Shown: positions 26,086 to 62,750 of the stretch, piece after piece
Layout of the letters: each line of letters opens with the position of its first letter
How positions within the stretch are numbered: position 1 is the first letter of the stretch
Assembly: GCA_002104905.1 (NCBI GenBank)
Contig: MCFE01000506.1
Span: 1-64,000, forward strand
Source of the DNA: Basidiobolus meristosporus CBS 931.73
Taxonomy: Eukaryota; Fungi; Basidiobolomycota
Direction: 5' to 3'
Length of the DNA stretch: 64,000 bases
The notes under the pieces: model-generated
What the model was told of the DNA's origin: nothing
Databases searched by the model: none
The model's input: only the letters and a program-made list of their open reading frames with translations
Position numbers and translations under genes: made by a program

Positions 26086-29000
26086 TGTTATGATCTGCCG
26101 CTTGAATGTTTAAGTTAGATCAGTTTTTAGTCAAATCAATTAGTATATGTTTAGGTTATCAGTATATCAGTATTATCTATGAAATCAGTAGCATTAGTCA
26201 GCAAATGAATCAGCAGATCCTTATCAGACAGAAATAGATATATTAAGTAGGATCTTATTGGGTGATGATGATGCAATCAAATGAGTCATCAGCCACAACC
26301 TACATTAGGAAATACAATTAGTCAGCAATTGATCTGGCAAAATGTATATAAGGAGCTGCTGGAACCTCAATAAAAAGCAGTTCAAGTTTTAGTGAATACA
26401 ATACTAGCTAAACTCCCTATTCCTCCACAACTCTTATACCAAGACTTGTAACATTGGTAGCAGCAATAACCAGAAACCTCCCTCCTGAAGAAAGAAGAAA
26501 CCACCCTCAAGATGTCGGACAATCAAGAATGGAAGAATGCCATGCGGCAAATCCTGGCCCAACAGCAGCAGTTACTCCAGATCCTCAGCCAACAGCAACA
26601 AGGAATGACTACCATGGCTCAGAGCCAGTAAAGCCCTGTCAAGAGCAACTTTAGTGTGAAGGTCAACCAGTACCATGGCAGAGTCAATGAAAACCTGGGA
26701 ACTTGGCTCTTTCAGATTGAAGAAGCTTTTAAAGCTAAAGGAATTGCTCTAGAGAGCAAGTTGCATTATGCAGCTTCTTACCTGGCAGATGCAGCTTTAC
26801 AGTGGTATCACAGCAAGATCAGGTCAGCTACTATGATGGGATGCTCTACAATCTCTACCTGGGATGAGTTTGTGTCGGAAATTCAGGATGCTCTTGAACC
26901 TCCACACCAGCAGACACTACTAAGAAGGAAGTTAAAGATACTCAGACAGAAAGGAAAGGTGCAAGAATACATCTATGAGTACAGATGTCTACTTGGACAA
27001 ATTAAAAGAATGGACCCGTTGGATCAAGTTGAATACTTTATTGATGGGTGAAAGAAAGAACTCGCAAAGAAGTCAATTACCAAAGACCTCAGACTATTGA
27101 AGAAGCCATCAAGATTGCCATTGACTATGACTCAGCTATCTTTGGACTTGGGAAGCCTACATTGACTAATCAGAAAGGCTATAATCATTATGAAAGAAGA
27201 CAATCAGAAGCAGTACCAATGGAAATAGACACTATGCAGAAGAATCCCTCCTCAGAAGAATGCAAGAAGAGAGGACTTTGCTTCAATTGCCACCAGCAGG
27301 GACATATTGCAAAGTACTGCCCTCATAGAAGAAATGGACACCAGCCAACAAGAACCTTCAACCATATTGAGTCCCATGAACACAGTAATGTGGAAGATGA
27401 GCTTGAAGAAGACTTGGAACTCACCTTCCATATGACAGAAGAGTACTTGTCCCAAATGACTTCAAACTCAGGGAAGTTATTGTACTTGAATGGAGTAATC
27501 AATGGAGTACCTGCCAAGATCATGATTGACTCAGGAGCATTGCATGAGTACATGTCAGAGCAATTTGCTTTGAAAGCTGGAATCAACTTGGAACCTGCCA
27601 AATCAACTTCAGTTTCCACAGCTGATGGGAACTCCCACATAATCAACCGTATTACCCAGCCAGTAAGAATGAAGATCAATGACTATGAAGAAGACCTACA
27701 GGCTTATATATTTAGGAACTGCAAGTTTGACCTTGTACTTGGAAAAACCTGGCTATTTTGTTGTAATCCATCAATCAACTGGAGAACCCATGCTACTCAG
27801 ATCCAAAAAGACAACAAGACCTATGAGCTATTACCTGCCATGCTGGATTTCAACTTGGTCAATTCCAGTGTGTATGAGACAAGTGAACTTAGCAAGACCC
27901 AGTTCTGTAGAGCACTTAGAAAAGGTACCGAGATGTTCCTCATGGCGGTATTACAGGAGGATTCCTCTACCCCAGCACCCCAGCAGGTCCAGACTCTCTT
28001 GAAGAAATATTCAGACGTGTTCCCAGATGAGCTTGTAAGCCTACCACCAGTCAGAGACGTGGATCATGCCATTGACACAGGAGATAGCCCTCCAGTGAGC
28101 AAGACACCTTACAGAATGAGTCCATTAGAATTGGAGGAAATGAAGAGACAAATTGATCAGCTATTGGAGCAAGGATACATCAGGCCCAGCAAGTCACCCT
28201 GGGGAGCACCAGTGCTTTTTGTGAAAAAGAAGGATGGAACACTTAGGATGTGCATTGACTACAGAGCCCTGAACTCAGTTACCGTCAAGAATAAGTACCC
28301 CATACCTTGGATTGATGAGCTTTTAGACCAACTTAATGGAGCCACTATTTTCAGTAAGATTGACCTCATGTCAGGATACAACCAAATTAGGGTGAAACCA
28401 GAAGATATTCCTAAGACAGCATTTAGGACCAGATATGGACATTACGAGTACTTAGTCATGAGTTTTGGCCTCACTAATGCCCCTGCAACATTCATGACGC
28501 TGATGCAGACTGTCTTTCAGGAGTACTTAGACAAGTTTGTGATAATCTACCTGGATGACATATTGATATACAGCAAGACAGAAGAGGATCACATAGTGCA
28601 CATTGAAAAGGTCTTGAAGAAACTAAGAGAGAACAAGCTATATGGCAAGCTAGCCAAGTGTGAATTCTTCAAGGAACACGTTGAATACCTGGGATGCATA
28701 GTGACTAGCACAGGAGTGACCTTAGACCCTAAGAAGGTTGAAGTTATCAAGAATTTGAAGCAGCCCCATAGCATATCAGAACTCAGATCCTTCCTTGGAA
28801 TGGTTTCCTATTATCGGAGATTTGTCAAGTCATTTGCAAGTATTGCAGCCCCTTTAACTGATATCCTCAAGAAAGACAATACCTACAAGTGGGACATAGC
28901 TTGTGAGACTGCCTTCCAGATGCTAAAGAATGAACTTGCTAAGCTGCCAAGCTTAAGAATACCAGACTTCAGAAAAGAGTTCACTCTGTGCACAGATGCT

Positions 29001-31022
29001 TCAGATTATGCAATTGGTGGAGTGCTGAGCCAAGAACACAAGGGAAAGGACTACCCTGTTGCCTTTGAATCCAAGAAACTGAACTCAGCAGAACAAAACT
29101 ATCCAGTCCATGCAAAGGAGATGCTTGCTATAATACACTGTTTGAAGACATGGAGATGCTATATTGAAGGAGTCAAATGCACTGTGAAGACTGATCATGC
29201 CTCCCTCAAGTATATATTTACTCAGAAGGTACTCTCTAGAAGAATGACAAGATGGAGTGAATACATTCAGCAATTTGACCTGGAGATTGTCTACTGTCCT
29301 GGAAAAAACAACACGGTAGCTGATGCATTATCAAGATTAGATCAAGTTGCACAACTCAACTTGGTGCATGAATCAGATTGGCCTAGCCTATTACCAAAGT
29401 ACTTGGAGGACCAAGCCATTCCTAATGAGGTGGATGAAGATATCAAGAAGATAATCCGTAATGAAGCCAGCAAATTTGTTGTACAGAATGAAACACTCTA
29501 CCAAATTATTGATGGAAGCCCTATTGCCTATTGTCCTTATGTTGCTTGCCTGGATTTAATACATAAGCTACACAATGGATATGGACATCTTGGGACTGAA
29601 GGAACCTATAGCCTTGTGAAAGCCAGAGCCTGGTGGCCCAGAATGAAACAAGACATTGAGAAGCTAGTAAAAACATGCCCAAACTGCCAAATCAATCAAG
29701 GCCAGCCACAAAGAATTGCCAAACTTTTCCCTTTGGAGCCTGTAAGACCATTTGAGAGATGGGGAATTGACTTTATTGGAAGACTGCCAACTACCAGGAA
29801 ATGCAACCGTTGGATCCTAGTAGCAATTGACCATGCCACTAAATGGCCAGTTGCTAAAGCTGTACCAATAGCCAGTGAACAAGAAGTTGCAAGTTTCATT
29901 TACCATGAGATCCTGATGCAGTTTGGATGCCCTGTGGAGATCTTATCCAATAGAGGTGCAAACTTTATGGCAAAGACATTAGAGGCTTACCTGGAAATGC
30001 AGCAGATCAGACACTTGAAAACCCCGGCATATCACCCCAGAACTAATGGAGTCACTGAGCGGTTTAATGGATTATTTGGAAAAATGCTGACCAAGTATGC
30101 AAATGGAGTTGTCAGTAGATGGGATGAGTATATAGACCAAGCACTCTTTGCATGCAGAGTCAGAGTACACAACACCACCCAGCAATCACCATTTTACTTA
30201 GTTTATGGATGTGAACCAAGGATTCCAGGAGATCTCACACAACCAAAGCTTACAGACACCTTAGAAGATGAACTCAGTCAGCCAAGTAGACACCAGCAAC
30301 TGGAACAAAGACGTCAAGAGGCACAGACCAAAGTATCTCAAAGTGCAGAAAAGATGAAGCAGAGATTTGATAAGACTATAGCACCAGAAGCATTGACAGT
30401 TGGGAACTTTGTATTGCTAAGAAACAACACTTGGAAGAAGTTTGAGCCACAATGGACAGGACCATTCAAGATCATCAGAGAATGTCCATTTGCAACTTAC
30501 CAACTGGTAGACAAACAAGGTAATATCTGGGAAGACTTAGTGCATAGGGACAGACTCAAGCGTGCAAGACTTGCTGATAATACTGAACCATCAAGATATT
30601 GGTAACACAAGAAAAGAGATTCAGGAGAACCCTCTCAGCTTTAGTAGGGGAGAATGTTATGATCTGCCGCTTGAATGTTTAATTTAGATCAGTTTTTAGT
30701 CAAATTAATTAGTATATGTTTAGGTTATCAGTATATCAGTATTATCTATGAAATCAGTAGCATTAGTCAGCAAATGAATCAGCAGATCCTTATCAGACAG
30801 AAATAGATATATTAAGTAGGATCTTATTGGGTGGTGATGATGCAATCAAATGAGTCATCAGCCACAGCCTACATTAGGAAATACAATTAGTCAGCAATTG
30901 ATCTGGCAAAATGTATATAAGGAGCTGCTGGAACCTCAATAAAAATCAGTTCAAGTTTTAGTGAATACAATACTAGCTAAACTCCCTATTCCTCCACAAC
31001 TCTTATACCAAGACTTGTAACA
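26086..31022 (+). mobile_element. Full-length Ty3/Gypsy LTR retrotransposon (family 1), young
   Basis: 368-bp LTRs (26086-26453, 30655-31022) with 5 mismatches counted by eye. TSD ATTG is confirmed by empty paralogous sites. PBS TGGTAGCAGC, PPT AGTAGGGGAGAA. Confidence 0.98.
26512..30605 (+). pseudogene. Gypsy single-frame gag-pol with 1 stop (26629) and 1 frameshift (~27048)
   Basis: MSDNQEW..., [23 protein letters not shown], RNase H TDAS, integrase GIDFIG..YHPRTNG..ERFN. No chromodomain seen. Confidence 0.95.
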
Positions 31023-32558
31023 ATTGCAAAGACTGGCAGATGAGATGCTTGACCTTGCAGTGCTGGCTGAAGACCAAGAGGTGTGGAAACCAGCAAATGA
31101 ACAGTGGCATGAAGCTATTTTGTACATATCAAAGTCTTGGAAATAGAGCATTACAGCAGAAAAACTTATTGAGTGGTGGATTTTAATAGAGTTACTTGTT
31201 GTGTGTGGGGCTGGGCTTGATTTCAGTGTAGGGTTCAGGGACTTGTACAGGTCAATTCAATTGGCTATAAATATAAATAAACAATTTGTATGCTTGAAAA
31301 GTAAGAGAAATGGTTGAGTCAGAAAGTAAGGAGTGTGAAAAGGAGGCAATAGTCAATCAATGCACATAAATGTGGGAGGTGAAAGAGTGTCTGGAATCAG
31401 AAAGTGAGAAAATTGGCAAAGAACCAACTAAAAGCCACTTTTCTATTGTTCTGATGAAAAATTTTGACCAAGTTTTTTATAATATCTGAGGTGCAATTAT
31501 TTTTTGACAGTCTTGACATGGAGTCCTGGTGGAAGCAATACCTCTTAGTCACAGAACGTAGAATCTGTGCTGGCCTTTTGATGGGTTCAACACAATGGCT
31601 TTTTATAAGGTCTGATTTCACCAAAAACGTGGTCAACATTTATATTCCCAATGATTCCTAAGATGTTTTGGTGTGGTTCCATGATATTTCACTCACTATT
31701 TAACATGCCATGCTCAATGTTCTATGTTTAAGCAGTAAGACTGGATGCTGGTAACTGACCATCATGTAGAAGCACATATTATTGTTTGCATTGGAGACAC
31801 CCCAGCCATCAGCAAGATAGCCAGCTGCTCTAGGCATAATGGATGGTATTGCTGTCAAATGTGTCAGACTCAGGGGATTTATTTCATAGCTCACTCAATA
31901 AACTATTATTAAAACACTAACAATAAGAACATCCTCTTTCCACTGAGTGAACAAGCATGCAGCTGAATATGTAGATCTCCACAAATACTCTATTTATTGT
32001 CAACTCCATCTTGCTTAGTTTGGAGAACCCTGGACCTTGCTTCACCTTTTGGAAGCTTTGCATGGAGGGGATGCATGGGAGGAGAGGAAGAGAAGTCATG
32101 TGGCCAGTACTACCATATCCCAAGCTCATCAAGAATTTTACTTTCAAGTCTGTTGTGGATGTGATAAATTGGCTTGTGAAGGACGGCCAGCCAGAGTTGG
32201 AAAATAGCAAGGACAGATGTGCACATAGGGAAACCTTTTCCTTTGGTATTAAGGAGCTGAGCAGGCCACATTTGCAAGTAATCAGCTTAGTAAGACAAGG
32301 CTGGGTTGGATGCAACAAGCAACTGTTTCTAATATGGACATCTTTAACAAGTTATGCTGGATTTCTGCTGGGTACAAGTCAAATTCAGCACCATTTAATA
32401 CTGATTGCATAAAACAGTAATCAGAGCACACTTATAAGAGAGACTAGAATCCAGCATAGAGAAGGAATAAATGACCAAGTATCAAAAAGCTTTGCGGACA
32501 TCAAAGAGGTATCCATATCTAAAGTGGTGGTAATCAAGTATATGTTAGCAAGATATAT

Positions 32559-35500
32559 TCTTATGAAAAATTATTGAGATAATCCTGTCAAAAGGCTGTC
32601 ACAAAGTTAAAGTCCTGTAACTAAGAAGTGCTGATCCTGTCAGGGCATTGTACAGAGACTGTTGAAAAATAATTTTACCCCAGATTTCACAAAAAACCTG
32701 GTCAAAATTTTCCATCACAATGATGAATAAGTGGCTTTTGATTGGTTCCCTGACAATTTGCTCACTTTCTGATCCCAGACACTTTATTGCCTTCTATGAT
32801 TGTGTGCACTGATTGGCTATTGCCTCTTTTTGTACTCCTTACTTCCTGACTCAACCATTTCTCTCACTATTCATGTATACAATTTGATATATTTCCATTG
32901 CATCTTCAGTTATACAATAATTGCCAACTGTATTGACCTATACAAGTCCCTATACCCTACACTAACATTAAGCTCAGCCCCACACTCAACAAGTGACTCT
33001 ATTAAAATCCACCACTCAATAACTATTTCTGCTGTAATGCTCTGGTTCCACAACTTTGGTGGTAGCCCAATGGATTTATGCCACTGTTCATTCACTGGTT
33101 CCCACATGTCCTGGTCTTCAGCTGGCACTTCAAGGTCTAGCACCTCATCTGCCAGTCTTTGCAATAAATCCTGGAATATTCCAGTATGTTTTCTTGAGCA
33201 CTGCTCTTGAAGAAGTGCTGCAACCTCTTGGTGTGCCTATTAATGTTCCAAAACTCCACTGATGGCATTGTGATAGTCTTTTGAGCTCTTGACATTGCAG
33301 CCTTGTCTGTCAGTGGGATCTCCACTCTGTCAACAATGGAAGATGTGGAGGCTGTGGTCAACAAATTGCATCTTCCAGCAAATGCATCTACCTTGCTGGA
33401 GTGTAGCTCAACTGGCTGCACTTCCAGCTCTTGTGAAAACAGCTGTTCTCTTATTGGTAATTCTTCTTGAATATGATGGGATTCAGTCTGTTTGTGGCTT
33501 GTGGTGTTAACTGCCAAGAACTGCAGTTTTTTTTTCATGCCTCCCTGTCTCAGGCTTGGTCAAACATTTTCCCTTAGCCTTCTCCTTTATCACTGCCAGG
33601 TCTTTCACTGCTACTTTGTCTGATAGCTTCTTGTAAAGAACCATGTTTTTTCCTGGATAAATTCTGCTCTGATGCATCTGTTTTGGCCTGCTTGTTCCTT
33701 GTTGGCTCTCTTCTAGCAGCCTGATGTTTCTTTTCTACTGGTTTTGAGCCCTCAACTGTAGTTGTGACAGGCTCCTGTAAAGCAGCTGGTTTTTATCATT
33801 GCCAGGTCCTTCACCAATACTTGGACTGGGTGCTTTTTGAGTAGAACTATACTTTTTTCTTCATAAATGTTGTGCTGGTGCATCCGTGTCTACCTGCTAG
33901 TCCCCAATTGGCACTCTTCCAGCTACCTGACATCTCTTTGATGCTTGTCTAGAGCTTTTGGCCTTGCTTATAACAGGCTCTTGAGGAAGCTGCTGATTTT
34001 CATCCATGGCACCCTTGTTCTTCTGCCTTTGATAATTTTGGCTTTTCTTCAGGTACTTTCTTAGCATACCAATGCTGGCCCAAAATCTGTTTGCCCATTT
34101 AAATCCAGGATAATGCTCATGGAACAAGTCAAGTGCATTGTGTTTGGCCTTGAGTTCCTGATGGTCCCAAGGTGTGCCAGCCTTAAGGTGATGGCATGCT
34201 AGACTCCTGATGGCCTTTTGAATATTAGCCCACTCTTCATTATTGCATACAACAGCTTCATGGATCTTCAATGTCTTTTGATTTTACGGCTTTAGTACAC
34301 ACACCACATTGTCTCCCTCCCATGCTGTGATAGGTTTCTCTGTGGGCTTTATCTTTGGGCACTGTTGTTGTGCTTCAACAACTGTACAGTGTTCCTCTGC
34401 TGTTACATTGGGAAATGGCTCAATTCTTGGCTGTGACATTGAGCTACTGGAGTTCCTTCTTTGCAGCAAAGATACTGCTCTCTCTACCTGGGATATTGAT
34501 TGCTCTACATGTATTATCTACTCATCCTGTTTCTGGACTATTTCCTGATTTCTCTGGGACATTGCATCTATCCTAGCAGCCACTGCACCTGATTGCTTCA
34601 TTAATGCTTGAGTATGAGCTGACAACATACTTGCTAATATGGGTGGTGGTGATATTATCATGGCCACTTGCTAGTCTTCAACTGAGGGTACTGTGCTTGC
34701 TACATTCTCATCTGCTTAAGCATAATGGTCTGCTTGTGGCTCTGCAGAGGTTCTCAATTGCCCACTTGACTGAGAGCCTGAGGAGTCTGCATTATTACCT
34801 TCAATGGGCACACTGTCCACAGGGCCTTCTTTGGATGTAGCCTTGCTTGTTGCACTGAAGGCCAAAGCTGTTGTAAAAATTTGTCTTTCCACCTAAATAT
34901 TCATTTTAGTCACTTAGATCATTACCTTCAAACACTAGAGAGTACTGGCCAAATTACTCGTTGGGATTTTCTTAGAATACTTTCACCAAAATACCAGGTA
35001 CCCAGAACATGAAAATTCTCAAAGTTGTCCAAACAGCCCCAAGCTTTCCACACATGTTCTTGGGACCTTCCTCAACCTATTCTATGTGTTTGTAATGCCA
35101 AGACCAGGTAGAAGTATAAATACTACTTTACATTCAATAAATCATTAAGTGAAACCACATAATCTACTTGTTCTCCTAATCACTTCCAATATCTCCAAGA
35201 CTCTTACAACAAAAGCAAGCTGTAATCTAACTGTTCTTCTGTTGCCATCAGTGGTGGGGCTTGATTGAGAACCAGACAATTTTGCTTTATTTTTTGGTGG
35301 CATATATATGGAAGCAAGTCAAACCGAAGGGGAAATAGTGTTACATATACATGTGTATGTGGTGCCACAATTTTATTTATAATGCTTACTATGGCAGGTC
35401 AATATTGAATCTTACATTCACATAGGTGCAATGTCTCAAGTACAAGACTGTCTTCAGTTCACATGAGCATTGACCAAAAAGTGATATAATAGTGTTACGT

Positions 35501-38288
35501 CATTAAAGGTCAAACTGTTGGCCCCATGGACAAGACTACTTTGACTCAATGTTTAAGAGAAGAGAAAATTGAGTATATGGCTATTGCAGCAAGCCTCTCA
35601 GCCATGAAGCACACAGACAGCATAGGAAGTATTACAAGGATCATGGCCAGTGTTTTGCCACCTAAGTCATATTTGACCATTCATTGGTCACTACTGTACC
35701 AACATTATCTTGCCAGCAAGTTGATACTTCTTTATCAGCACCTGGCTGTCTTTGTCACCTTGCGCAAACTGAGTCAGGTGAGTTTGTAACACCATTAGGC
35801 TCACCTCAGCCTTCTGAATATGGCATGCAGAGTGATAGCTCTGACAAAGAAGGTTCACTGATGGATTTGTGCCTATCCCCCCTAACAACAGTACTATGTA
35901 TGAGCCCGGTCAAATCATCATATGCAATGAGACAACACCTGTTGAAACAAATGCCAAGGATACTTTAGGGAGCCAAGTGAGCCCAGTAATCTATCTACTA
36001 GTCATTGATGTAATGTTGTGGCTAGAGAAGTGGCATGTTTCCACTAATATCAGTAATGGGGGCTCTGAGGATTTTTTACTACTTCTTGCCAAAATCATAC
36101 CAGGATGCAACTTACCATGTACATGGTATAAGTGTACAACCGTCATGTGGCTGGCAACATCAGATCCAGTGACTGTCCTGATTCCAGCATGTGTTAACAG
36201 TTGCATGGCATTCACATCCAAAAATGCTACCATTGCAACATGTCCAAATTGTCAGGAATCCACCACCATTGAGGGAAAAGATTGTTTTCACTCCAGATAC
36301 ATCCCGTCATACCCCATCTGAGGAAGCTGATGCAGTCCAACAAATATTGCAAAGCTATACAGTACCACACTCAGTAACAATCAAGCGCAAACATATCCAA
36401 TATATTTGATGGCAAGCATTACAAGCAGCTAAGAAGCAAGGGCTACTTTGAAGGTATATATGACCATGCCTTTGCTTTAGCACTTGATGGATTCTTGTTA
36501 AACAAGTACTCTACCAGCAAATGCTGCTGGCCACTGATTCTCATCAATCTGAATCTACCACCCATCTTACAGTATCAGAGCAATAATCTGATGGTAGTCC
36601 CAATGGTATCTGGGCCTAAACCATCACCCAGCCTGGATAGCTGCCTGTATCCATTGCTGGATGAATTTTGTATGCTTTCCAGCATGATAACAGTAAGTGG
36701 CCATCATGTAAAAGCACATATTATTATCTACATTGGAGATACCCCAGCCATCAGCAAGATAGCAGGTTTCCCAGGCACAATGGATGGTATTGCTGTTAAA
36801 TGTGTGAGATTCAAGGAATTTACTCCATAACTCACACACATTATTATTACCCAAACACTAGCACTAAGAACTTCATTTCTCCACAGAGAGAACATACAGA
36901 AGTCAGCATGCAATTGCAGCAAAGTTGGCAAGCTAAACACCATTGGCCAGAATATGGAATCAATTGGAAACTGGAGATATTTAAGATACAGGGTAACTGT
37001 TGGAGCAAAAGCTTTCCACTGGGACAAATGCATTTGCTTTTCAACAGTATCCCTATACTGATGACCAAGTTGTACATGGTGTACTTCCAGCTAAATGAGC
37101 CCTTTGAGATACTGGAGAAATTTGAAAGAATTGGCAAGATATTACAAAGTATCCCCTACCCTAAGTACTTCTCATGGGCTTCAATCAATAATCATATGCA
37201 TTTGCAACAATACAAATGCAAAGACTGGATGAACTGAATATGTATTTATTCAAGTGGTGTTCTCAAGCCATTCCTGCCAAGAGTACATTGGAAGCATTGG
37301 GAGTCATATTTGGACATTATAGGAGCATTTATCCAAAAGCAGACCACCAATGCCAACTTGACAAATCTACAGCTGTTGTGTGAGGAGTTGGTAAAGGGAT
37401 ATGAGCAGATATACTGCAAACATAAAGCTGAATGTGTAGATCTCTGCCACTACTGGATCTATAATCTACTCTATCTTGGACAGTGTGTGGAGAATATTGG
37501 GCCTTGCTTCACCTTTTGATAGTTTCCTATAGAGTGGATGTGTGGGGAGGTAGGAAGACAAGTCAAGTTGCAGATACAACCATATACCAATCTCATCAAG
37601 AATATTACCTTCAAGTCCCTCATGGATGTGATGGGTTGGAACATGGAGGATGGCCACAAAGGGTTGGAAAATACTGAGGACATATGTGCACATGTAGACA
37701 CCTATGCCTATGGCATTAAGAAGCCAAGCAGCCCCAATGCATGGGTAATCAGTTAAGTTATGCAAAGTTGGGTTGAGTGCAACAAGCAGCTAATTTTTAT
37801 TAGGAAGACTCTGCCAAGATATGCTGGATTTCTTATGGTCACAAGCCAACTTCTACACCATTCAATACAGAATTCACACAAACAAGCAGAAAATGGAAAC
37901 ACCATTTGATAAATTGGTACGGTAGCACTATACAGAACCAGCTGTAGGCTGTCATACTGCCAATATAATGCCATCAGTATCTTGCTGTGAGGCTGTCAAA
38001 ATACCGTCATGTTTCTTGCCATATAAGGAAATTTGACATCCTGGCCAACTGGATACACTTAAAATAGTTGTAGTGCGCTAAAAGACCGCAACAATATCAT
38101 GCAAATATTGTCAAGTTGTATCCCTTTATTTGGTTGTAAAATTAGCAAAACATTGTCATGATCCTGTCAAAAGACTGTCAGGAGGGTCACTAATTCCTAA
38201 CTGCTGGTATTGTGATGGTCACTTAGCAAGATCCTGATTGCTGATCTGGATTGGATCCACCCACAGGACCAAATTATTCTTCATAGGG
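32559..38288. mobile_element. Full-length family A CACTA/EnSpm-type transposon
   Basis: Degenerate left TIR TCTTATGAAAAAT, right TIR TTCTTCATAGGG, TSD TAT/TAT. ORF1 (-) 35303 to ~32910; transposase (+) from 35526. Confidence 0.92.
34869..35211 (+). repeat. Solo LTR, Copia family C
   Basis: TGTTG...CAACA, 343 bp, TSD AAAGC. Confidence 0.92.
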
Positions 38289-38407
38289 TATATGTAGCCT
38301 GTATTGCAAGGTTTGTGGATAGTTCACAAGTATCACACAGCAAAGTCATAATATACAAAGAGTTATTTGATCTTGCAAATATATAATCTTGATTAGATGT
38401 AGGGATT

Positions 38408-39140
38408 AGACTTGTTCTGTTGGATAGTGCCACATTGAGCCATGAGTGCCAAATAGTGCCATAGTGTGCCTGAGAGTCATAGTAGACCTAAACTTGGCCA
38501 CAGAGTGTGGCATAGAGTTCTGCATATTCATGCAAAGCAGCCCCTGTGTTTCACCTACAGTGCAGGAGAAAATCAATTTTTTAACCTTTTTTTTGGATCA
38601 AAATTGTGCATGACATAAAAGAGCACTGACAGACTGAAGATATGCATCTGGTACACAATACCCATGGCACTCTAAATCTAGCCCCACAGGCTTGTAGCAT
38701 GTCACAAAAATGCATGGCACTATCTTGGTCCACTGGTACTATCTGGCACTATAAGTGCTTTGTATAGGTTCTACTTTAGGGCTAATATTTAAATATAGTG
38801 CCAGATAGTACCAGTGGACCAAGATAGTGCCATGCATTTTTGTGACATGCTACAAGCCTGTGGGGCTAGATTTAGAGTGCCATGGGTATTGTGTACCAGA
38901 TGCATAACTTCAGTCTGTCTGTGCTCTTTTATGTCATGCACAATTTTGATCCCAAAAAAAAGGTTAAAAAATTGATTTTCTCCTACACCGTAGGTGAAAT
39001 ACAGGGGCTGCTTTGCATGAATATGCAGAACTCTATGCCACACTCTGTGGCCAAGTTTAGGTCTGCTATGACTCTCAGGCACACTATGGCACTATTTGGC
39101 ACTCATGGCTCAATGTGGCACCATCCAACGGAACAAGTCT
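38408..39140. mobile_element. 733-bp palindromic (fold-back) non-autonomous element
   Basis: ~345-bp inverted arms (9 mismatches counted), ~42-bp spacer, ends AGACTTGTTC/GAACAAGTCT, TSD ATT/ATT. Confidence 0.96.
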
Positions 39141-39143
39141 ATT

Positions 39144-41020
39144 CTGCTTTGAGAGCATCATAATGTTAGCAGCTTGGAATTATTCACCCTCTTCATAATT
39201 GTATGGCAGGATTGTGAAGGTGTTTGTCTGTTTTTGCTGCCATAAAAGTAGAAATTTGACAATGTTTTAATAGTCTTTTAGCAGGACTGGCAAGGCTTTT
39301 GAAGGACGCAGTGTGGTCTACATTTATTTAAGCAGAACTAACTAGCCAATACATATAATTGCCTTACATGGAAGAGCTTAAGCATGTTTTGACCTGCTTG
39401 TTGCAGACCTTAATTGGAATTATCATGGAGTAGTGTGGCCAAAAGCTAGTCTTGTACAATACTACAACACCAATTTACCATATGGTGATTCTTCTTTGTA
39501 CCTCTCTATGTACCTTTGTTATATCCTACTTTTGTATCACCCTTCCTCATTTGCTTACCCATTACTACCACAGGGCACCCACTGCAATCAACACCAATCT
39601 GTCACCCCATCTTTACAGCTTTTCAGTGCAACACCTGCAACATTACCATACACTTGTATTACCTATGATATATACATTATGTAGGAGTATTCATGGTAGC
39701 TACCACTTTACCATGAATACCTCCTAAATATCTGCAGAGCACTTTTGGTACTTGTTATATATGTTCCTTCTCCCTGCTAATTCTAGTCACTCACATATGT
39801 GTACTGTGGTTCTTGCTGGTACAAATTCTGTATTTAAAGGTACAAAGATTAGCTTGTATCCTACAGAAGGTTGAAATACATTGGTAAAGAAGTATATTTG
39901 AGCTTCAGATAGGCTTATATCTGAAACACTAAACCTACAAAAATGTAAGCTCTAAGAATAATTTACTATAGTATGTTTCCTTGGTGTAATAACTCAATAA
40001 GAAATATTTATGATGATCATGTCAAAAGTCCATCACAAAGCTAAAGTCCCATGACTAGGAGGTAGTGATCCCACCAGGACACCATGTAAAGGCTATTGAC
40101 AAATAATTGTACCCCAGATTTTGTAAGAAACTTGGTCAAAGTTTTTCATTACAACTGTACATAAGTTGCTTGTGATTGGTCCTCTGCTAGTCCTCTCACT
40201 TTCTGATCCTGTACATTCAATCACCTCCTATGCTTATATACTTAGATTTGCTATTGCCTCTTTTTTGCATTCCTTACTTCACAACTCAACCAATTCTCTT
40301 ACATTTTATGCATACATATTGATTTATTTCCACTGAAACATCAGCTCTACTTCATTTGCCAATTATGTTGACCTATACAAGTCCCTATGCCCAACACTAA
40401 ACTTAAGCCCAACCCCACATCCAACAAGTATTTCCATCAAAATTCACCATTCAATAAGTATTTCTGCTGTAATGCTCTTTTTCAATGATTTTGGCTAGAG
40501 CCCTGTGACCTTATGCCACTATCAATTCACTGGTTCCCACATATCCTGGCCTTCAGCCAGCACTGCAAGGGCTAGCACTGCATCTGCCAGTCATTGTAAT
40601 AAATTCTTGCAATATTCAAGTGCATTTTCTTAAGCACTGCTCTTGAGGAAGTGCTGCAACCTCCTGGTGTGCCTATTAGTGTTCCAAGATCTCACTGTAG
40701 GCACTGTAATAGTCTTTTGAGTTTGTAATGTTGTTGCTTCTTTAGTCAGTGGGATCTCCACTCTGTCAACAGTGAAGGATGTGGAAGCAGTGGTAGACAT
40801 ATTGCTACTCTCTGCAAACCCCTTTACCTCACTGGAGTGTAACTCAACTAGCTATGCTTTCAACTCTTGAGAAAACAGCTTTTGTCTTGTTGGCAATTCT
40901 TCTTGGCTATGATGGGATTCACCCTATTTGGGGCTGAAGGCGTTAATTGGTGAGAGCTGCAGCTTTTTCTCAGGCTTCCCTGTCTCTGGCTTGAGTAGGC
41001 CTTTTTCTTTATACATTTAC
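39144..41020 (-). mobile_element. Family A fragments (right-end region 39144-39830; left end plus ORF1 C-terminus ~39993-41020)
   Basis: Homology to 53450-54200 and to 47750-48760. Confidence 0.75.
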
Positions 41021-42419
41021 CCCTTTGAAAACTAATAAGGTCCTGCAGGTGAATTCTATCCAGATCAGCCATCAAGATCCCATCTGGGGACCATTATAAT
41101 GCCAGTAGCTTGGAATTGATGGCCATCTACACAATCTTAAGATGGGATCACAGCAGCATTTGGCAAATTTTGCTGCCAAATAAAGTTAAAAAACATAATG
41201 GTGCTTGAACAGTGTTTTGCCAAGGGTGGCATGGCATTGTGCTGGACTTGTTGCACTCTATAATGCTCAGAGTGGATTGAACTGGCTAGTACATCCAATT
41301 GCCTTATATGGCAAAAAAGCTTGTCAGTGTTTTGATGGCCTCATTGCAAGTCTCAGATTTCATTAGCATGGCAGTATGGTGCCCTACAGCTAGTTCTGTA
41401 TAATGCTACCATTAAAATTTACTAAATGATATTTTCTTTTTCTACCTGCCCTTGCGCAACCCATATATTCCACTCTAGAATCCCCCCTCCTTATTTGCTT
41501 ACCCACTACTATCTTGAGTATTCCACATATAATTTGAATCTAAAAACACTATGGTCTCCTACTTACCAGCCTCTACAATCATGCAAGCCTACCAAAATTG
41601 GCATATTTCTATCACATCAACTTTACAGCTTTTCAGTGTGATACTTGCAAAGTTGCCACATACCTTGTATTGCTGATGACATAGAAGCCTAGCAAACATA
41701 TGCATTATTGTCACCACTTTTACAATGAATAACACCTGAATATCTGCAAAGAACTTTTTGGTACTTAGCCAATAGACTTGGTCCACTGTACCATGTCAGG
41801 GTGTGCAGCACAATCCACAGTTGCAAAGAACAATCAGGTGCAGTTATGTGGCTACCTGAAGGCAGGATTGCTCTTGGACAATTTTGCTCTATGGAGGATA
41901 ATCTTGCACACTATGGCACAATCTGACACAACAAGGCTGGCACAAAAAATTGTGCCAACCTGTAATGTTTGCATCATGTGCACAATTGGATACAATCATT
42001 GTGGTAGGCAAAATCCAGTACTTGGATATGTTTCTTTATGTAAATGGAAATAGATATGTATCACACTATAAACTACACTGATACTTACCATTTTAGCTAC
42101 CATCACTACAATTGGGCAGTATGTCAATGGCTCATTGGTTCAAAAGTATCCTGAAGCTCTTAGCTCCAATTGGCTCATTGACCAATACAGAGATACCTGA
42201 TTTGCCATCTGATATCCCATTTTGCTCATTGAGCCAGTAAATCCCTGATCTCAGTGATTGGACAAGCTGTCATAGCAAGCACACAACCAATTGTGTTGGT
42301 GCAAATCAGATCAAATAGCTGCACTGGTGTTACAGATGATGTATATATATGCAGGGTGCTTATTATAGGGGCTCTGTCACAAATGTGAGATGACCTTAAT
42401 ATTGTGTATAACAAAAATT

Positions 42420-43811
42420 TAGTGAACACTGATTTGCAATGGCTCAATTAGGATTGCAATAAAAATGTGTTATTTGGTTCATGACAAGTATTAACAATTC
42501 AATGCAATTGCATCATCTTCTCCTAGGTTTTTTTCTGATAGGGAATACAACTGAAGCGTTTGGTTGTGATATATTTTGCACACCTGAACTAGTTTCTTGT
42601 TGACTATAATCTTGGCTACTTGTGTACTTGTAGTCAGTATTTTGCCTTGTAGTTGATGAGTGCAATGCTGGAGCTTGGCTGTGCTAAATTGCTTCAGACA
42701 AAATGATGGAATCAGCCTGCAATGCCACTTGCTAACATGTTCTTTTACTTGCCAAAGGCTCTGGTTGTGGAGGCACTTCATGTGGGTCATCATCAGTCAT
42801 TTCACCAGAAGTGACTTGCAGATGGTCAGGTGTGCCGGTATGTGCAGGTGCAACTTGATGCATTGGCATAGCCCTTGGCTGAGTTCAATGTGATGTTACA
42901 TGTTGATGAAACTTGGCCTGCTCCAATGGACTTGTGTCTAAATGGGCAGTTTGGTGGGTTCTGTTAGTCTTACTCTGAAGCGCACATGTTGATCTTATGC
43001 GCATTGACTCAATGCAGGACAAAGTTGTGAGGGGTGTTGGCATAGATTTGACTGACATGTGCCAGTGCACCAACATTGCAGGGGATGGTAAGGAATCCAG
43101 TGTGGCATGCTGGCACAATCAAGAAGCAGTTGCTTGCAGTCTGTATTCTTCCTCTTGAAGTTCACCTCCTAATACTTCAAGGTACTCACTTACACTCTGC
43201 CTGATACATCAGAACTGTTGCCTTGATGAGTCCTGTGTGTATTGCTCTTGGAAGCCACTTCACTCTACTAATATATCACATAGTACATTAGTCATTTGAG
43301 GCAAAAACTCATTCAAAATAGACTTGTTCCATCATTCTAGCTGATCATAGTGCCCAATAGTGCCATAGAGTGCCAGATGGTGTCATACAGTGCCAATTTG
43401 GGATCAAAACTGACATTCATATGACCGTAAAATATCAAATTAATAACAAAGTATACAGCACTTTCTGGCACTATGATCAATGGCACAATGGAACAAGCCT
43501 AATCCCTTTGGTTCCCAAAACTGAGGCACAAACAAATACATCCAGCCCATACTGTGCAAATTGAACGCAGAATTGTTTGTGCACAGCTTCCTCATCAAGT
43601 CCCCTCACTCTCAGCTCATTCTTGACTTAATACTTGTCTTGTTGTATATCTTTTTACATACATCCACTGGCATCTTGATGTAGAACTCATGCCAGAGCTT
43701 TCTACTCAGATTCTTTCATTTCTGCCAACTCTCTGTGGTATCCAGCTCTACTAGATTAATGAGTAGTGACCATATATTGGTATGAAGGCTCATCATAGAC
43801 ACTTGGACCAT
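42420..43811 (-). pseudogene. Family B ORF2 (copy 2), boundaries approximate
   Basis: Homolog of 1132-2670; interrupted by the 181-bp MITE. Confidence 0.55.
43320..43500. mobile_element. 181-bp MITE with family B-type TIRs
   Basis: AGACTTGTTCCA...TGGAACAAGCCT, TSD AAT/AAT; absent from copy 1 (~1440). Confidence 0.92.
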
Positions 43812-44295
43812 ACTAAAATCATTTGGCAAGAACTTAAATGGATCTGTCAGTACCTTTCTGGTCCAGACTGTGCTTGTGAGCTGGGGGATGGGTTTTGTCT
43901 GGGATGTACTAAGTATGAGTTGAGACTTGGTATAGGGACCATATAGATGGATCTAGATTCTAATACAGAAATATATTGGCATCAACCTGGTCTTGTATGA
44001 AATTTATATGAAAACTAATATGATTGTTGAATTTTCCATACATTATGCATAGTGCATGTTGGATTGCATTGACATGGATCAGATCACATCATTGCAGATT
44101 TCTTATTTGATTATAGACTTGTGAGTATATTATCAATAAAGCCACCAAGTCATTGTTTTAGGATGATTTTTGCAACATAATGTTGGGATTCATGTCAATT
44201 CATGAAGATTTAATCACAATACATGGAAATAGATAAATTAAGCTGATTGCACCAAACCAGTTTTAACACCTCTACTCAATCATGGACCAAATTTT

Positions 44296-45051
44296 ATGAC
44301 TTACTCATCTGAATGGTCTTTTCTCATCAGTCCCTTCACTACAGCTGGATATCCTTTTGATACATTAGAAGAGATATATACCAAGTATTATGAACCATCT
44401 AGCCCAATCTGATCAAGGAGATCCCCTGTTAAGCTTCTCTGCTATTAAAAGAGCTATTGCCCTACATGTATTCAATCAACCATTGATGGCAACAGAAATA
44501 CTGGAGGTTTTCATTCTCAGCTGACAGCAATGAAAATCACCTTGCAGAGGGCATCAATGACCTGGAGCAAGCCTGGAATACTAGGCTCAGAAGCACCAAT
44601 GGACTTCCATATCTCACAGTGTTCAGCCACAGGTTCCCTATCAGGAGTGTTTAGGATACCTTCCCAGTCAGGATTAACAGGCCTTCTAGAGGGCAGAGTC
44701 ACTTTTATTCTGGCAAATTCAAGGCACACTGCATGAAGTTTCAAGTACTGTAACATCATCTGGTTTAGTGGGTGATTTGTTGGAAGTAGGCATGGCAATG
44801 CACTGTAGGTAGAGAATCATCCAGGATTCAGTAGAGGGGAGAAGTGTAGGGCAGATTTAGCTTATATGGGAGAGGATTGTCTGAGATTAGGATGCATTAC
44901 AGCTCATAGGAAGCTAAGGAATGGAGTGCTTAGCAGGAAGCAGAAGCTCTACAATGAGATATTTAATCATCTCAGAGTGAGAGTAGAGCATACATCTGCA
45001 TATGTAAAGAGATTCAGCATACTAGCAGGTAAATACAGAGGAAAGTTATGA
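44296..45051 (+). pseudogene. DDE_Tnp_4 (ISL2-like) transposase of family B copy 2, ~250 codons, disrupted
   Basis: ..DTFP..RP..FYSGKFKAHCMKFQ..GSRH..ADLAYMG..YNEIFNHLRVRVEH..KRFSILAGKYRG. Confidence 0.85.
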
Positions 45052-47335
45052 ACTGGAGAAAACAGCAGAATAGGTAAAATAGTCAGAATGCTTATTGACG
45101 CACAGTATATTCATAAAAGAAGACATCCACCAAGAGAAATGTGTCTGAATCTTTATGAAGAGTAAATAAAGCACAAAAAGCACTGTTCTGAGTAACATAA
45201 GTAAGATTGATTAGAGTTACCAGTGACTGTATCTTACCACTGGCATAATGGTAGGCATAAGAGTGCTATATCAATCTGGCACTATAAACAGGCTAGCACT
45301 ATGTGGCACTATCCAGCCAAACAAGTCAAATATATTCCTTCTCCCTGCTGGATTATAGTCCCCCTTATTGGAGCACTCCAGCTCTTGTTTGTGTGAATTC
45401 TGTCTTGAATGGTATAGAAATTGGCTTGCAATCAAGAGAAATCTGGCATACCTTGTAGGGTTTTCTAATAAAATTTTTGTTGCTTGTTGCACCCAACCTA
45501 ACATTGCTTTACTTAACCAACTACCCAGGCATTGGGACTGCTTAAATTCATTATTCCATAGGCATAGGTGTCTCCATGTGCACATCTGTCCTCAGAATTT
45601 TCCAGCTCTTGATGGCTGTACTGCATTTGCCAACTGATCACATCCATGATTGGCTTGAAGGTAATATTCTTAATGAGATTAGGATATGGTAGTACTTGCA
45701 ACTTGACTTACCTTCCTGTCTCCCCACATTTCTGCTCTATAGGAAACTCCCTAAAGGTGAAGCAAGGCTACTATTCTCAACACATCAAGCAAGATGGAAT
45801 AGCAGAAGGATACAGTTGCTGCAGAGATCTACATGTTCAGCTTTATATTTGTAGTACAGCTGGTAAATTCTGTCACAAACTCCTTGCGCAAAAACTATAC
45901 AGGTGTCAAGTTGGCATTGGTGACCCGCTTCTGGATAAATATTCCTATAACATTGACATATGACTCCAAATGCTTCTAATATACTCTTGAAAGAAATAGC
46001 TTCAGAAGGCTACTTGTATAAATACATATCTAGTTCATCCAGTCCTTGCACTTGAATTATTGCATATGTGTACAATTGTTGATTGGAGCCTGTGAGAAGT
46101 ACTAAGGGTAGCAGATACCCTACAATATCTTGCAGTTCTTTCCAATTTCTCCAATATCTCCTAGGTCACATTTAGCTTCAAATGCTCCATGTACAACTTG
46201 GTCATCTGTATGTGGATTTTGCTTAGAAGCAAATGAATTGCTCCCGGTGGAAAGCATTTGCTCCAACAGATACCCTCTATCTTAAGCAACTCTGAATTCC
46301 ATTAATTACATATTCTGGTTGATGGCTATAGCTTGCCGACTTTGTTGCAACTACAGATTATCTTCTGTATATTCTCTGAGCAGGAAGACAATGTCCTAGT
46401 GTTAATGTTGGCCAATAATAATGTGGGTGTTTTATGGAGTAAGTCCCCTGGATCTCACTGATGGAGATCCCACTGACAGACAAGTCTACAACATCAAGAA
46501 CTCAAAAGACTATCACAATGCCTTTGGTGGAATTTTGGAATATCAATAGGCACACCAAGGGGTTGCATCACTTCTTCAAGAGCAGTGCTCAAGAATACAC
46601 ACTTGAAATTGCAAGGACCTGTTGCAATGACTGGAAGATGAGATGCTAGACCTTGCAGTGATGGCTGAAGACCAGGATGTGTGGGAACCAGTGCATGAGC
46701 AGTGGCATAAAGCTCTTGGGTTCCCACCAAAGTCATGGAATCAGAGTATTACAGCAGAAATACTTTCTGAGTGGTGGATTTTAATGGAGGTACTTGCTGA
46801 GTGTGGTGTTGGGCTTAATGTCAGTGTAGGGTACAGGGACTTGTATAGGTCAATATAATTAGCTATTGAGGTATAACTGAAGTTTTAACAGAAATAAACA
46901 ACTTGCTTGCATGAAAAATAAGAGAATTGGTTGGGTCAGGTAGTAAGGAGTGTGAAAAAGAGGCAATAACCAATCAATGCACACAAATGTAGGAGGTGAA
47001 AGAGTGTCTGGGATCAGAACGCAAGAAAATTGGCAGAGAACTAATTAAAAGCCACTTTTGTATTGTTGTGATGAAAAATTTTGACCAAGTTTTTTATGAT
47101 ATCTTGGGTGCAATTATTTTTTGACACTCTTTGCATAGTGTCCTGGTGGAATCATTACCTCTTAGTAATGGGAATTGGAATCTGTGACAGCCTTTTGAAG
47201 GGATCATCACAATAATTTTTCATAGACAAAGTATTTCTCACAGGCTCCAAGCAATATTGATATCTATATGCAACAATACAAACACAAGGATTGGATGGAC
47301 TGGATGAATATTTATTCAAGTGGCCTTCTGAAGCA

Positions 47336-47747
47336 ATTTCTTAGTAGCAACTGAGTTCTGTTTGATTGGATACCTTCAGCTCCTTAGACAGGCAGGCTTT
47401 AGTCTCCTCCAATATTTCTAAGTTATTGGCAGCAATAATAAGTTCATCCATGTGGAGAGCTAATAGACCTGAATCTGTTCTATCTAGCTTATTGTATATA
47501 CTATAGTCTACAGTACTCCCTTAGGAACCCAAAGATTCCATATATGAATCCATCTTGCCATTCTAGGCATTTGGTGATTGTTTGAGTCTATTTAGGGACT
47601 TTTTAAGCTTACAGACATAATGGGAGCTATCCTGGTCAAAAAACCCATCAGGCTGGTCCATGTACCCATCCCAGCAAGTTTCCCTGTCAAAGATGCAATC
47701 TTTACATCCATTTGATGACTGAAAAGCCTATATTTACCTGTAATATA
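47336..47747 (-). pseudogene. Copia RT fragment, probably the continuation of the family C element at 54265-57013
   Basis: HQMDVK..YMDQPDGF..VCKLKKSL. It continues the RT motif order broken at 54265 (..IRLILAI) by the family A insertion. Confidence 0.8.
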
Positions 47748-48076
47748 CCCTATGATAAACTATTGAGATGATCCCATCAAAAGGCCATCACAAAGTTAGA
47801 GTCTTGTGATTAAGAGGTACTGATCTTGTCAGGACACTGTCCAGAGACCATTGAAAAATAATTGTACCCCAGATTTCACAAAAAACTTAGTCAAAATTTT
47901 TCATCATGACAATGTAAAATGGCTTTTGATTGGTTCCCAGCCAATTTGCTCACTTTCTGATCTCAGACACTCTCTTGCCTCCTATGTTTGTGTGAATTGA
48001 CTGGCTATTGCCGCTTTGTACACTCCTTACTTCCTGACTCAACTGTTTCTCTTACTTTTCATGTGTACAATTTGAT

Positions 48077-50878
48077 TTATTTCTGTTGAAACTTCAGTTG
48101 TACCTCAACTGTCAATTGTATTGACCTACACAAGTTGCTACACCCTACACTAACATTAAGCCCAACCCCACACTCAACAAGTAACTCCATTAATATCCAC
48201 CACTCAATAAGTATCTCTACTGTAATGCTCTGGTTCCATGACTTTGGCAGAAACCCAATGGCTTTATGCCACTTTTCATTCACTGGTTCCCACATGACCT
48301 GGTCTTCAGCTGGCACTTCAAGGTCTAGCACCTCATTTGCCAGTCTTTGCAATAAATCCTTGCAATATTCCAGTGTGTTTTCTTGAGCACTGCTCTTGAA
48401 GGAGTACTGCAACCTCTTTGTGTGCCTATTAATGTTCCAAAACTCCACTGAAGGCATTGTGATAGTCTTTTGAGCTCCTGAAGTTGTAGTCTTGTATGTC
48501 AGTGGGATCTCCACTCTGTCAACAATGGAGGCTGTGGAGGCTGTGGTAGACAAATTGCCTTTTTCAGCAAACTCATCTATCTTGCTGGAGTGTATCTCAA
48601 CTGGCTGTGCTTCCAACTCATGTGAAAACAGCTGTTTTCTGGTTGGTATTCTTCTTGGTTATGATGGATTCAGTCTGTTCCTGGCTTGCGGTGTTAATTG
48701 GCAAGAACTGCAGTTTTTTTGCGTGCCTCTCTGTCTCAGGCTTGGGTAGACATTTTTCCCTTCACCTTTACCTTTATCACTGCCAGGGCTTTCACTGCTA
48801 CTTTGTCTGAGTACTTCTTGTAAAGAACTATGTTTTCTCCTGGATAATTTCTGCTCTGACATATCTGTTTTGGCCTGCTTCTCCATTGCTGTCACTCTTC
48901 TGGCAACATGACATTTCTTTTCAGCTTGTTTTGAGCTCCCAACTGTAGTTGTGACGGTCTCCTGCAAAGCGGCTGGCTTTTATCACAGCCAGGTCCTTCA
49001 CAGCTACTTTGACTGGGTGCTTCTTGAGTTGTACTACGCTTGTTCCTTGATAAATGTTGAGCTGGTGCATCCATGTCTGCCTGCTTGTCCCTAATTGGCA
49101 CTCTTCCAGCTGCCTGACATCTCTTTGACACTTGTCTGGAGCTTTCAGCCCTGCTTGTAATGTGCTCTTGAAAAAGCCGCTGGCTTTTAGCCATGGCACC
49201 CTTGTTCTTCTGCCTTTGATAGTTTCTGCTATTCTTAAGATACTTTCTTAGCATACCAATGCTGGCCCAAAATCTGCTTGCCTATTTGAATCCAGGATAT
49301 TAGACTTGTTCCATTGGATAGTGCCACATTGAGCCATGAGTGCCAAATGATGCCATAGTGTGCCAGAGAGGCCAAGTGAGCCTCTACCTGGCCACAGAGT
49401 GTGAAACATAGCTCTGCATCTTCATTCAAAGCAGCCCCTGTGTTTCACCCATTGTGTTGGAGAAATTCCATTTTTTGACCTTTTTTTTGGATCAATGTTG
49501 TGCAGGATGTGTTAGAGCACAAGCAGATTGAAGATATGCATCTGGTGCTCAATACCCATGGCACTCTGAATCTAGCTCCTGTAGCTTGTATCATGTCACA
49601 AAAATGAATGGCACTATCTTGGTCCACTGGTACTATCTGGCACTATATTTAAATATTAGCCCTAAAGTAAGATCTATACAAAGCACTTAAAGTGCCAGAT
49701 AGTACCAGTGGACCAAGATAGTGCCATTCATTTTTGTGACATGATACAAGCTACAGGAGCTAGAATCAGAGTGCCATGGGTATTGAGTACTAGATGCATA
49801 TCTTCAGTTCTCCTGTGCTCTTACACATCCTGAGCTACATTGATCCACAAAAAAAGGTCAAAAAATGGATTTTCTCCTGCGCAATGGGTGAAACACAGGG
49901 GCTGCTTTACATGAAGATGCAGAGCTATGTTTCACACTCTGTGGCCAGGTATAGGCTCACTTGACCTCTCTGGCACACTATGGCATCATTTGGCACTCAT
50001 TGCTCAATGTGGCACTATCCAACAGAACAAGTCTAATGCTCATGGAACAAGTCAAGTGCATTCTGCTTGGCCTTGAGTTCCTGATGGTCCCATGGTATGC
50101 CAGCCTTAAGGTGATGGTGTGCTAGACTTCTGATGGCCTCTTGTATATTAGCCCACTCTTCATTATTGCACTCAATGGCTTCATGGATTTTCAATGTCTT
50201 TTGATTTTTAGGCTTTGGTATAAACACCACATTGTCTCTCTCCCATGCTGTGATGGGTTTTTCTGTGGGCTTTATCTTTGGGCACTGTTGTTTTGCTTCA
50301 AAGACTGTATGGTGTTCCTCTGCTGTTACATTGGGAAATGGCTCAACTCTTGGCTGTGACATTGAGCTACTTGAGTTCCTTCTTTGCAGCAAAGATACTG
50401 CTTTCTCCACCTGGGATATTGACTGCTCTACACATTTTATCTGCTCATCCTGTTTCTGGACTATTTCCTGATTTCCCTGGGCCATTGCATCTATCCTATC
50501 AGCCACTGCACTTAATTGTTTCATTAATGCTTTGGTACAAGCTGACAACATACTTGCTAATATGGGTGGTGGTGATGTTATCATGGTCACTTGCTGATCT
50601 TCAACTGAGGGTACTGCGTTTGCTACATTCTCATCTGCTTGCGCATAATGGTCAGCTTGTGGCTCCACAGAGATTCTCAATTGCCTACTTGACTGAGGGC
50701 CTGGGGAGTCTGCATTATTACCTTCAATGGGCACACTGTCCACAGGGCCTTTTTTGCATGTAGCCCTGCTTATTGCACTGAATGTCAAAGCAAGCTGTTG
50801 TCCAACTGTTCTTCTGTTGCCATCAGCAGTGAGATTTGGTTGAGAACCAGACAGCTTTGCTTTATTTTTTGGCGGCAT
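48077..50878 (-). pseudogene. Family A ORF1 (TnpA-position accessory protein, unknown function), split by the palindrome
   Basis: MPPKNKAK...EWANIQEAIRSL..PWDHQE..ALDLFHEH|YPGFK.A.RFWASIGMLRKYLKNSRNY...FWNINRH..KSWNQSIT..EWW; repeated in several copies. Confidence 0.8.
49302..50034. mobile_element. 733-bp palindromic element, second complete copy (spacer in opposite orientation)
   Basis: Same ends and length; flanks ATT/AAT at a host site reading GGATAATGC in other family A copies. Confidence 0.96.
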
Positions 50879-58610: not shown

Positions 58611-60905
<2,295 letters not shown>

Positions 60906-61350
60906 AGAAACAGGTAGTGCGAAGAGATGGATGCCCGAAAAACGCCTAGCCACCATCCCCCCCCCGAAAAAAAATCACTGGTAAAGGTGAGATCTGCCCG
61001 TACTTCTTCATCTGTACATAGATCGGACTTTTCCCATTCCAACCTACCCATAACCCATGCATTCAGTGCTCTTCTTGTACAAACCAAACCGCGATATAAG
61101 GATATTTTTGAATTGCAACTAATCACACAAACGTCGAAGTTGATGTAATTTATGTAGTAACTGGAATAAAATACGGTTCATGCCGAGTGTTAGTACGTCA
61201 TGGGGGCCGGGTCGAGGGTGAGGGTGAGGACGAGGATGAGGACGAGATTCATGAATAAAAAATTTGTCTCCCGAAATCTATTTATCCAACCACCATACTG
61301 AAACCAGTCCTACGCTTCAGTAATCATACGATAAGCTACCACCGCCCAAC

Positions 61351-62584: not shown

Positions 62585-62750
62585 ATAGAATAAAGGCAGC
62601 ATCCAAGCATGGATCGGATTGGATTGAACTGGCTAGGATATGGACACACAGATAGCGTGTGGGACGGTGGCGTGATGGTCAAGGTCAAGGTCAAGGGTTA
62701 AGGTTACGAATATGAATGGATATGATTTATTCCAGATTGAATCACAAAAT

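Follow-up and report, generated by a model that had tools for sequence, protein, structure and literature searches.

A very abundant 733-bp foldback MITE, probably of Pangu type, in Basidiobolus meristosporus and the shared evolution of its inverted arms

Large genomic palindromes and plastid inverted repeats are single-locus structures in which the two arms around a spacer are kept alike, in place and over long times, by intrachromosomal conversion. Comparable likeness has been described for the ends of transposable elements. In Galileo, whose subfamilies have diverged, the terminal inverted repeats (TIRs) of a single copy are 98-100% identical, and it has been proposed that one TIR serves as the template for repairing its partner (PMC3573991). 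In maize Mutator, a subfamily's left and right TIRs resemble each other more than either resembles those of another subfamily ("homomorphs"), and similar mechanisms of symmetry regeneration have been put forward for these Mu TIRs (PMC10401008). Template switching between the arms of imperfect inverted repeats is reported to homogenise them (PMC13100816, PMC8794818) and to create mirrored changes in hairpins (PMC5453318, PMC8794818, PMC13100816). A further system of interest is the Pangu group of the PHIS superfamily, which makes a 3-bp 5'-ANT-3' target duplication and has AG-initial termini; the survey of this group started its search from transposases and notes that it may have overlooked MITEs (PMC4482050).

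The element described here lies in a stretch of 64,000 nt from B. meristosporus CBS 931.73 (contig MCFE01000506.1, positions 1 to 64,000), hereafter the window. Copy A is a near-perfect palindrome of 733 bp on the plus strand (38408-39140). Inverted-repeat pairs, self-alignment and motif positions delimit its left arm at 38408-38753, starting with AGACTTG, while its right arm (38794-39140) terminates in CAAGTCT. The 40-nt spacer between them (38754-38793) forms the hairpin loop and is unpaired in the DNA fold. The element is flanked on both sides by an ATT target-site duplication (38405-38407 and 39141-39143). BLAST of copy A against the window found two further copies. Copy B is complete, also 733 bp long, and lies on the minus strand (49302-50034; arms 49302-49647 and 49688-50034), its orientation opposite to that of A being judged from the spacer; its flanks are ATT (49299-49301) and AAT (50035-50037). 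A sequence-only reading of this DNA had reported 733-bp hairpins at the positions of A and B, and its coordinates and sizes were correct. It had also counted nine mismatches between the arms of A, which agrees with the 8 substitutions and one single-base indel found here. An ORF of 281 amino acids without a Pfam match (50033-50878, minus strand) takes in the final two bases of copy B (50033-50034) and extends through the host repeat into which that copy was inserted.

Copy C (3997-4594, plus strand) is old and truncated. Its left arm (3997-4209) measures 213 nt, with approximately 130 nt missing, and is followed by the spacer (4210-4254), the right arm (4255-4594) and an ATT (4595-4597). The left junction (3988-3999) falls on a CAG that is common to the host repeat and the element, and from the sequence the loss looks like a deletion at this 3-nt microhomology after insertion. 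Host-repeat paralogues of the site, near 51436, 35861 and 20199, continue differently.

In copies A and B the two inverted arms (343 and 344 nt of the 733 nt) make up 94% of the element, and the spacer measures 40-46 nt across the copies. As had been claimed from the sequence alone, the spacers are homologous in all three copies, those of A and B differing at 3 of 40 positions. In each arm, four GTGCC motifs lie at the outer end and three more, inverted, close to the loop; in the left arm of A they lie at 38427, 38446, 38456 and 38466 (GTGCC) and at 38666, 38716 and 38745 (GGCAC). These clusters may be protein-binding sites. As single-stranded DNA, copy A folds into one long hairpin of -427 kcal/mol with a z-score of -65. 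A 16-mer of the arm occurs six times exactly (seven times with at most two mismatches) against 0.06 expected. The folding z-score and the 16-mer count together exclude a chance origin of the structure.

That the element has moved is recorded in the host repeat around copy B. Its left flank resembles 33613-34112 (84.8%) and its right flank 34112-34609 (91.6%), so that the paralogous host-repeat copy is uninterrupted there and carries a single AAT (34112-34114, plus strand). A second paralogous empty site, again with AAT, lies at 11805-11807 (plus strand). The sequence is GGAT-AAT-GCTC at the empty sites and, at the filled site, GGAT-ATT, the element, then AAT-GCTC, which indicates that insertion of copy B duplicated the 3-bp AAT and that one of the two duplicates has mutated since. 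These comparisons, with the ATT on either side of copy A, fix the exact limits of the element as AGACTTG...CAAGTCT. Assignment to Tc1/mariner, which duplicates TA, was rejected on the 3-bp AAT of the empty sites. The 733-bp element is thus a mobile element, as the sequence-only reading had proposed, on the evidence of target duplication, empty sites and very high copy number. More specifically, it is a non-autonomous foldback MITE: it has terminal inverted repeats and a target duplication with empty sites, and it is small, non-coding and abundant. Its longest ORF (97 amino acids, in the right arm) has no homologue among 5.8 billion proteins.

Several features suggest that the element belongs to the PHIS superfamily and is of Pangu type, namely its ANT duplication, its AG-initial termini, both as in Pangu (PMC4482050), and a terminus in common with a Pangu-like element nearby. 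The duplication reads AAT at the empty sites, ATT or AAT at the filled sites, and AAT on both sides of two neighbouring elements. The first of these is a PHIS/Pangu-like transposon of 3.56 kb (41774-45328, plus strand), 2.6 kb downstream of copy A, in which 24 of the 28 terminal bases at the right end are the same as those of the 733-bp MITE. Beyond the first 9 or so bases, the two termini of this transposon are strongly unlike each other. A 61-amino-acid ORF within it (44866-45051) has a weak match to DDE_Tnp_4 (E 2e-4; 21.4 bits, under the Pfam cut-off of 24.8 bits), and its nine other ORFs of at least 50 amino acids have no Pfam match. The transposon looks like a candidate transposase source of which this copy has decayed. 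At about 3.5 kb, this candidate autonomous relative compares with a reported Pangu mean of about 3,487 bp (PMC4482050). The transposase link of the 733-bp element to Pangu consists of the common terminus and the one weak DDE_Tnp_4 match. In its arms the element departs from the described families, whose TIRs measure 11-40 bp (PMC4482050), as against 343 nt and 94% of the length here. The second neighbour, nested in the 3.56-kb element, is a short MITE of 181 bp (43320-43500, plus strand; AGACTTGTTCC...GGAACAAGCCT; AAT/AAT). It has the same type of terminus as the 733-bp element, so the local MITE system comprises short and foldback forms.

Other elements also occupy the window. Copia (gag, integrase, RVT_2), gypsy and CACTA-type elements and a genic right end lie at 21323-25239, 27048-30605, 51444-52265 and 60152-63962. 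The gypsy polyprotein ORF is 1,185 amino acids long, and the CACTA-type element carries a transposase fragment. The right end of the window is rich in G+C (up to 56%) and contains an ORF for a helicase C-terminal region together with an uninterrupted exon of 403 amino acids that encodes the C-terminus of a CSE1/CAS exportin gene product.

The abundance of the family was assessed from a sample with two runs (X1 and X2), whose contigs were placed on 1.3 kb at a likeness of at least 80%. A total of 7,043 pieces in X1 and 7,817 in X2 fell on this stretch. Summed word depth ranged from 31,000 to 1,014,600 across the element, compared with about 160-230 in single-copy flank bins; the element thus stands at about 150-5,000 times flank depth, depth being only a rough guide to copy number. 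The genomic copies number in the hundreds to thousands, a figure read from depth and not a count. In each run, more than 140 contigs leave the element at its first base (38405-38407) into unlike, AT-rich flanks, which indicates many different insertion sites. The left flank of copy A (38108-38288) is repetitive in its own right, reaching about 400-900 times flank depth in the reads, with a sharp end at 38288 and relatives at 53855-54265, 18481-18890 and 41012-41428. A second, independent sample labelled as the same species (X5 and X6) yielded only 36 low-depth pieces of the 733-bp family, whereas X1 and X2 each gave more than 7,000. This gap may mean that strains or close relatives differ greatly in copy number, or it may be an effect of the data. 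Beyond these samples, metagenome contigs scanned for a conserved 16-mer returned 120 single chance matches, none of which BLAST confirmed; in viral contigs, an 18-mer had only one match, of 20 nt and due to chance, and BLAST of a phage collection for the element gave no match.

In order to compare the arms, all six from copies A, B and C were aligned, with the right arms reverse-complemented, and every variable column was classified. At 23 sites a state is restricted to both arms of A, and at 11 to both arms of B; at four more, A and B differ in both arms alike, bringing the mirrored A/B total to 38. Only two real sites are mirrored in C alone. Changes confined to one arm total 7 in A and 22 in B; C has 28 (with a further 10 opposite its missing left arm), so that the ratio of mirrored to one-arm changes falls from 23:7 in A through 11:22 in B to 2:28 in C. 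Side-specific sites common to A and B are limited to two, at alignment index 11, which is a CpG, and index 156, which is not. Between its own arms, A diverges by 2.3% (8/343), B by 6.7% (23/343) and C by 16% (34/213). The arms of A differ from those of B at 51-57 of 343 positions. Over the same columns, the left arm of C differs from the B arms by 13-14% (27-30/213) and the right arm of C by 16-17%. The sequence-only reading had stated that arms are more alike within a copy than between copies, which holds for A and B and breaks down in C. The four variant pairs that it quoted as copy-specific were all found by alignment in both arms of their respective copies; they sit, however, on the branches leading to A and to B, and may be markers of subfamilies.

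The maximum-likelihood tree of the arms gives the same picture. The two arms of A form a clade (support 100/100, stem 0.108), as do those of B (92/88, stem 0.029), but the arms of C form none, and the C tips have lengths of 0.10-0.12. Forcing the three left arms into one clade made the tree 120 log-likelihood units worse, and clustering by side was rejected (p-AU 7e-44). Grouping by copy and not by side, which had been put forward as the check for concerted evolution, was therefore found for A and B, and not for C.

The mirrored changes comprise 11 transitions and 12 transversions and have the same spectrum as the one-arm changes. Because half of them are transversions and their spectrum equals that of the one-arm changes, they are ordinary mutations, copied secondarily into the opposite arm, and did not arise in parallel. 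Parallel mutation at hot spots, whether by CpG decay or by a RIP-like C-to-T process, was rejected on the same grounds. One mirrored change is of a different kind. At 38686-38692 and at the mirror position 38855-38861, both arms of A contain a 3-nt block that is the in-place reverse complement of the B and C state (TGT to ACA between CC and GG; CCTGTGG vs CCACAGG). It is very unlikely that this inversion arose twice independently, and to judge by its form it would be the signature of a small hairpin-loop inversion or a template-switch mutation that was then mirrored.

A second inverted family in the window served as a control. Its two loci, each of about 2 kb (46462-48513 and 31023-33369), have arms of about 760 and 610 nt. 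The right arms are 87.6% alike between the loci, and arms within a locus are only 82% and 77% alike; homogenisation is therefore no general rule for inverted repeats in this genome. This family may represent ordinary repeats paired in inverted orientation rather than foldback elements. Its unit of about 800 nt also occurs singly at 39985-40805 and around 9940-11063.

Likeness of the arms could in principle be preserved by selection for hairpin pairing at the RNA or DNA level, with independent compensatory mutations in the two arms. The element does fold as a near-perfect 340-bp hairpin, and models of long-hairpin miRNA precursors score on it, though below threshold. Such selection would have to account for 38 mirrored changes, the 3-nt inversion among them, with a transition/transversion ratio equal to that of the unselected one-arm changes. 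Moreover, copies B and C are plainly decaying, and selection across thousands of dispersed copies is implausible. We therefore regard this explanation as highly improbable. The ten Rfam matches are all sub-threshold (the best, MIR810, reaches 99.9 bits against a gathering score of 170), and identity with an Rfam miRNA was rejected; the matches are centred on the hairpin tip and score as any long hairpin would.

When a palindrome is read from an assembly, fold-back of the assembly or polishing of reads might also equalise the arms, and the sequence-only reading had named a fold-back artefact as what would overturn its proposal. No single contig among those listed spans the whole element. Nevertheless, each of the three copies has flanks of its own, target duplications and two empty sites are present, thousands of contigs fall on the element, and contigs of X5 and X6 run from arm through spacer to arm over the centre (e.g., record 19, 38649-38852). 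Polishing, for its part, would pull the arms towards the family majority, yet A has 23 minority variants in both of its arms. An artefactual origin of the symmetry is accordingly almost beyond belief.

The symmetry could be renewed at different times, and the explanation that we consider the best overall, and probable though by no means secure, is that it is renewed in the propagating lineage and that the arms of a copy decay independently once it has been deposited. In a multiplying source lineage, a new mutation in one arm would be either lost or copied to the other arm. The copying could follow a break in one arm, made by transposase or during replication, that is repaired with the other arm as template; alternatively, the nascent strand could snap back and switch template across the hairpin. 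Subfamilies would thereby come to differ at mirrored positions. In a deposited copy that is no longer acted on, the arms would decay independently, and a single evolving lineage of symmetric source elements would have deposited C early, B later and A recently. On this explanation, the identity between its arms would mainly date a copy: A, with arms 2.3% apart, would be young, C, at 16%, old, and B, at 6.7%, in between. Old resident copies of the 733-bp element would thus lose their symmetry, unlike large palindromes and plastid inverted repeats.

The principal evidence for this timing is that arm divergence across A, B and C is inverse to the number of mirrored changes. Root-to-tip lengths, in contrast to these unequal divergences, are of the same order, about 0.07-0.12. 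Unequal and inversely related divergences place the copying in the propagating lineage rather than in steady conversion within residents, although the copying step itself is one that we infer, and the clock-like argument has three points, from the three copies read base by base. At two of the one-arm differences of A (38627 and 38907), the family majority in the reads matches the other arm of A, as expected for mutations after insertion. Against the explanation, the root-to-tip length of B (0.07) is shorter than those of A and C (0.11-0.12).

If arm-to-arm gene conversion instead went on in every resident copy, by heteroduplex repair in a hairpin or cruciform or by template switching during replication, the variants of A would have arisen in place. 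In keeping with this, one-arm differences are absent from the 108 nt next to the loop in A (P 0.033) and from the 72 nt next to it in B (P 0.0035). This deficit suggests that some homogenisation may occur after insertion near the hairpin tip. The A-type variants, furthermore, are not demonstrable in other copies, the variant depths of the read table being upper bounds only that differ between two runs of one sample, and the mirrored variants of A could have arisen inside copy A itself. However, a steady process acting in place would yield similar equilibrium divergences, and those observed spread seven-fold and run inversely to the length of the mirrored branch. Copy C has 28 one-arm against 2 mirrored changes, and its arms are as distant from each other as C is from B, a pattern at odds with homogenisation continuing in resident copies. 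We therefore consider it unlikely that ongoing conversion in residents is the main source of the symmetry. The sequence-only reading had proposed repeated arm-to-arm copying; the 38 mirrored against two side-specific sites bear out the copying, but its placement inside each resident copy is contradicted by C (28:2) and by the inverse relation. The other mechanism that it named, renewal of one arm from its partner during transposition, may still apply.

The opposite extreme is that the whole arm is regenerated at every transposition, through a snap-back or half-element hairpin, so that each insertion is born a perfect palindrome. This, too, would tie symmetry to the propagating lineage and would make the youngest copy the most symmetric, as observed. 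It is weakly contradicted by the two left/right asymmetries that A and B keep in common (index 11 and 156) despite about 11% mirrored divergence. By a rough estimate, about 0.15-0.5 such coincidences would be expected by chance, and the CpG at index 11 is possibly a parallel change. We know of no description of such a step in DDE cut-and-paste transposition, and we hold whole-arm regeneration to be improbable. If it were true, obligatory regeneration of symmetry would give a DDE cut-and-paste transposon a replicative route to thousands of MITE copies.

The 733-bp family can be set beside related systems. Like the foldback elements and palindromic MITEs Drosophila FB, Galileo (PMC3573991), Tetris (PMC4079207) and Tm1 (PMC3169594), it consists almost entirely of inverted arms with a short middle. 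Those elements belong to other superfamilies (P, Mutator) and often have tandem arrays in their arms, whereas the 733-bp element has dispersed GTGCC motifs, no tandem array and a much smaller size. Mu TIRs, about 200 bp in length, lie on either side of genes or captured DNA (PMC10401008), whereas the element described here is without internal cargo. Mu heteromorphs have formed via recombination between clades (PMC10401008), and there is no heteromorph among the three copies compared here. The likeness to template switching lies in the copying of a stretch from arm to arm in one event and in small in-place inversions such as that of TGT to ACA in copy A. Template switching is known from short hairpins and from inverted repeats in promoters (PMC5453318, PMC8794818, PMC13100816), and for a 340-nt transposon arm it is proposed only. 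What is particular to the 733-bp family is its superfamily, the 94% of its length taken up by arm and its great abundance.

On the three copies, the family is a good example of a known phenomenon and not a new one. For the upkeep of likeness between long inverted ends amid the drift of subfamilies, the explanations so far, including those for Mu and Galileo, are no more than proposals. A family that is nearly all arm, with very many copies of different ages, could give a clean, countable record of this process, in which mirrored changes would mark time in the active lineage and one-arm changes the time since deposition. Taken across the whole family, such a record could yield the frequency with which symmetry is renewed and the length of the copied tracts. 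The starting point of copying, loop or termini, would, in turn, separate models based on a hairpin or template switch from those based on break repair.
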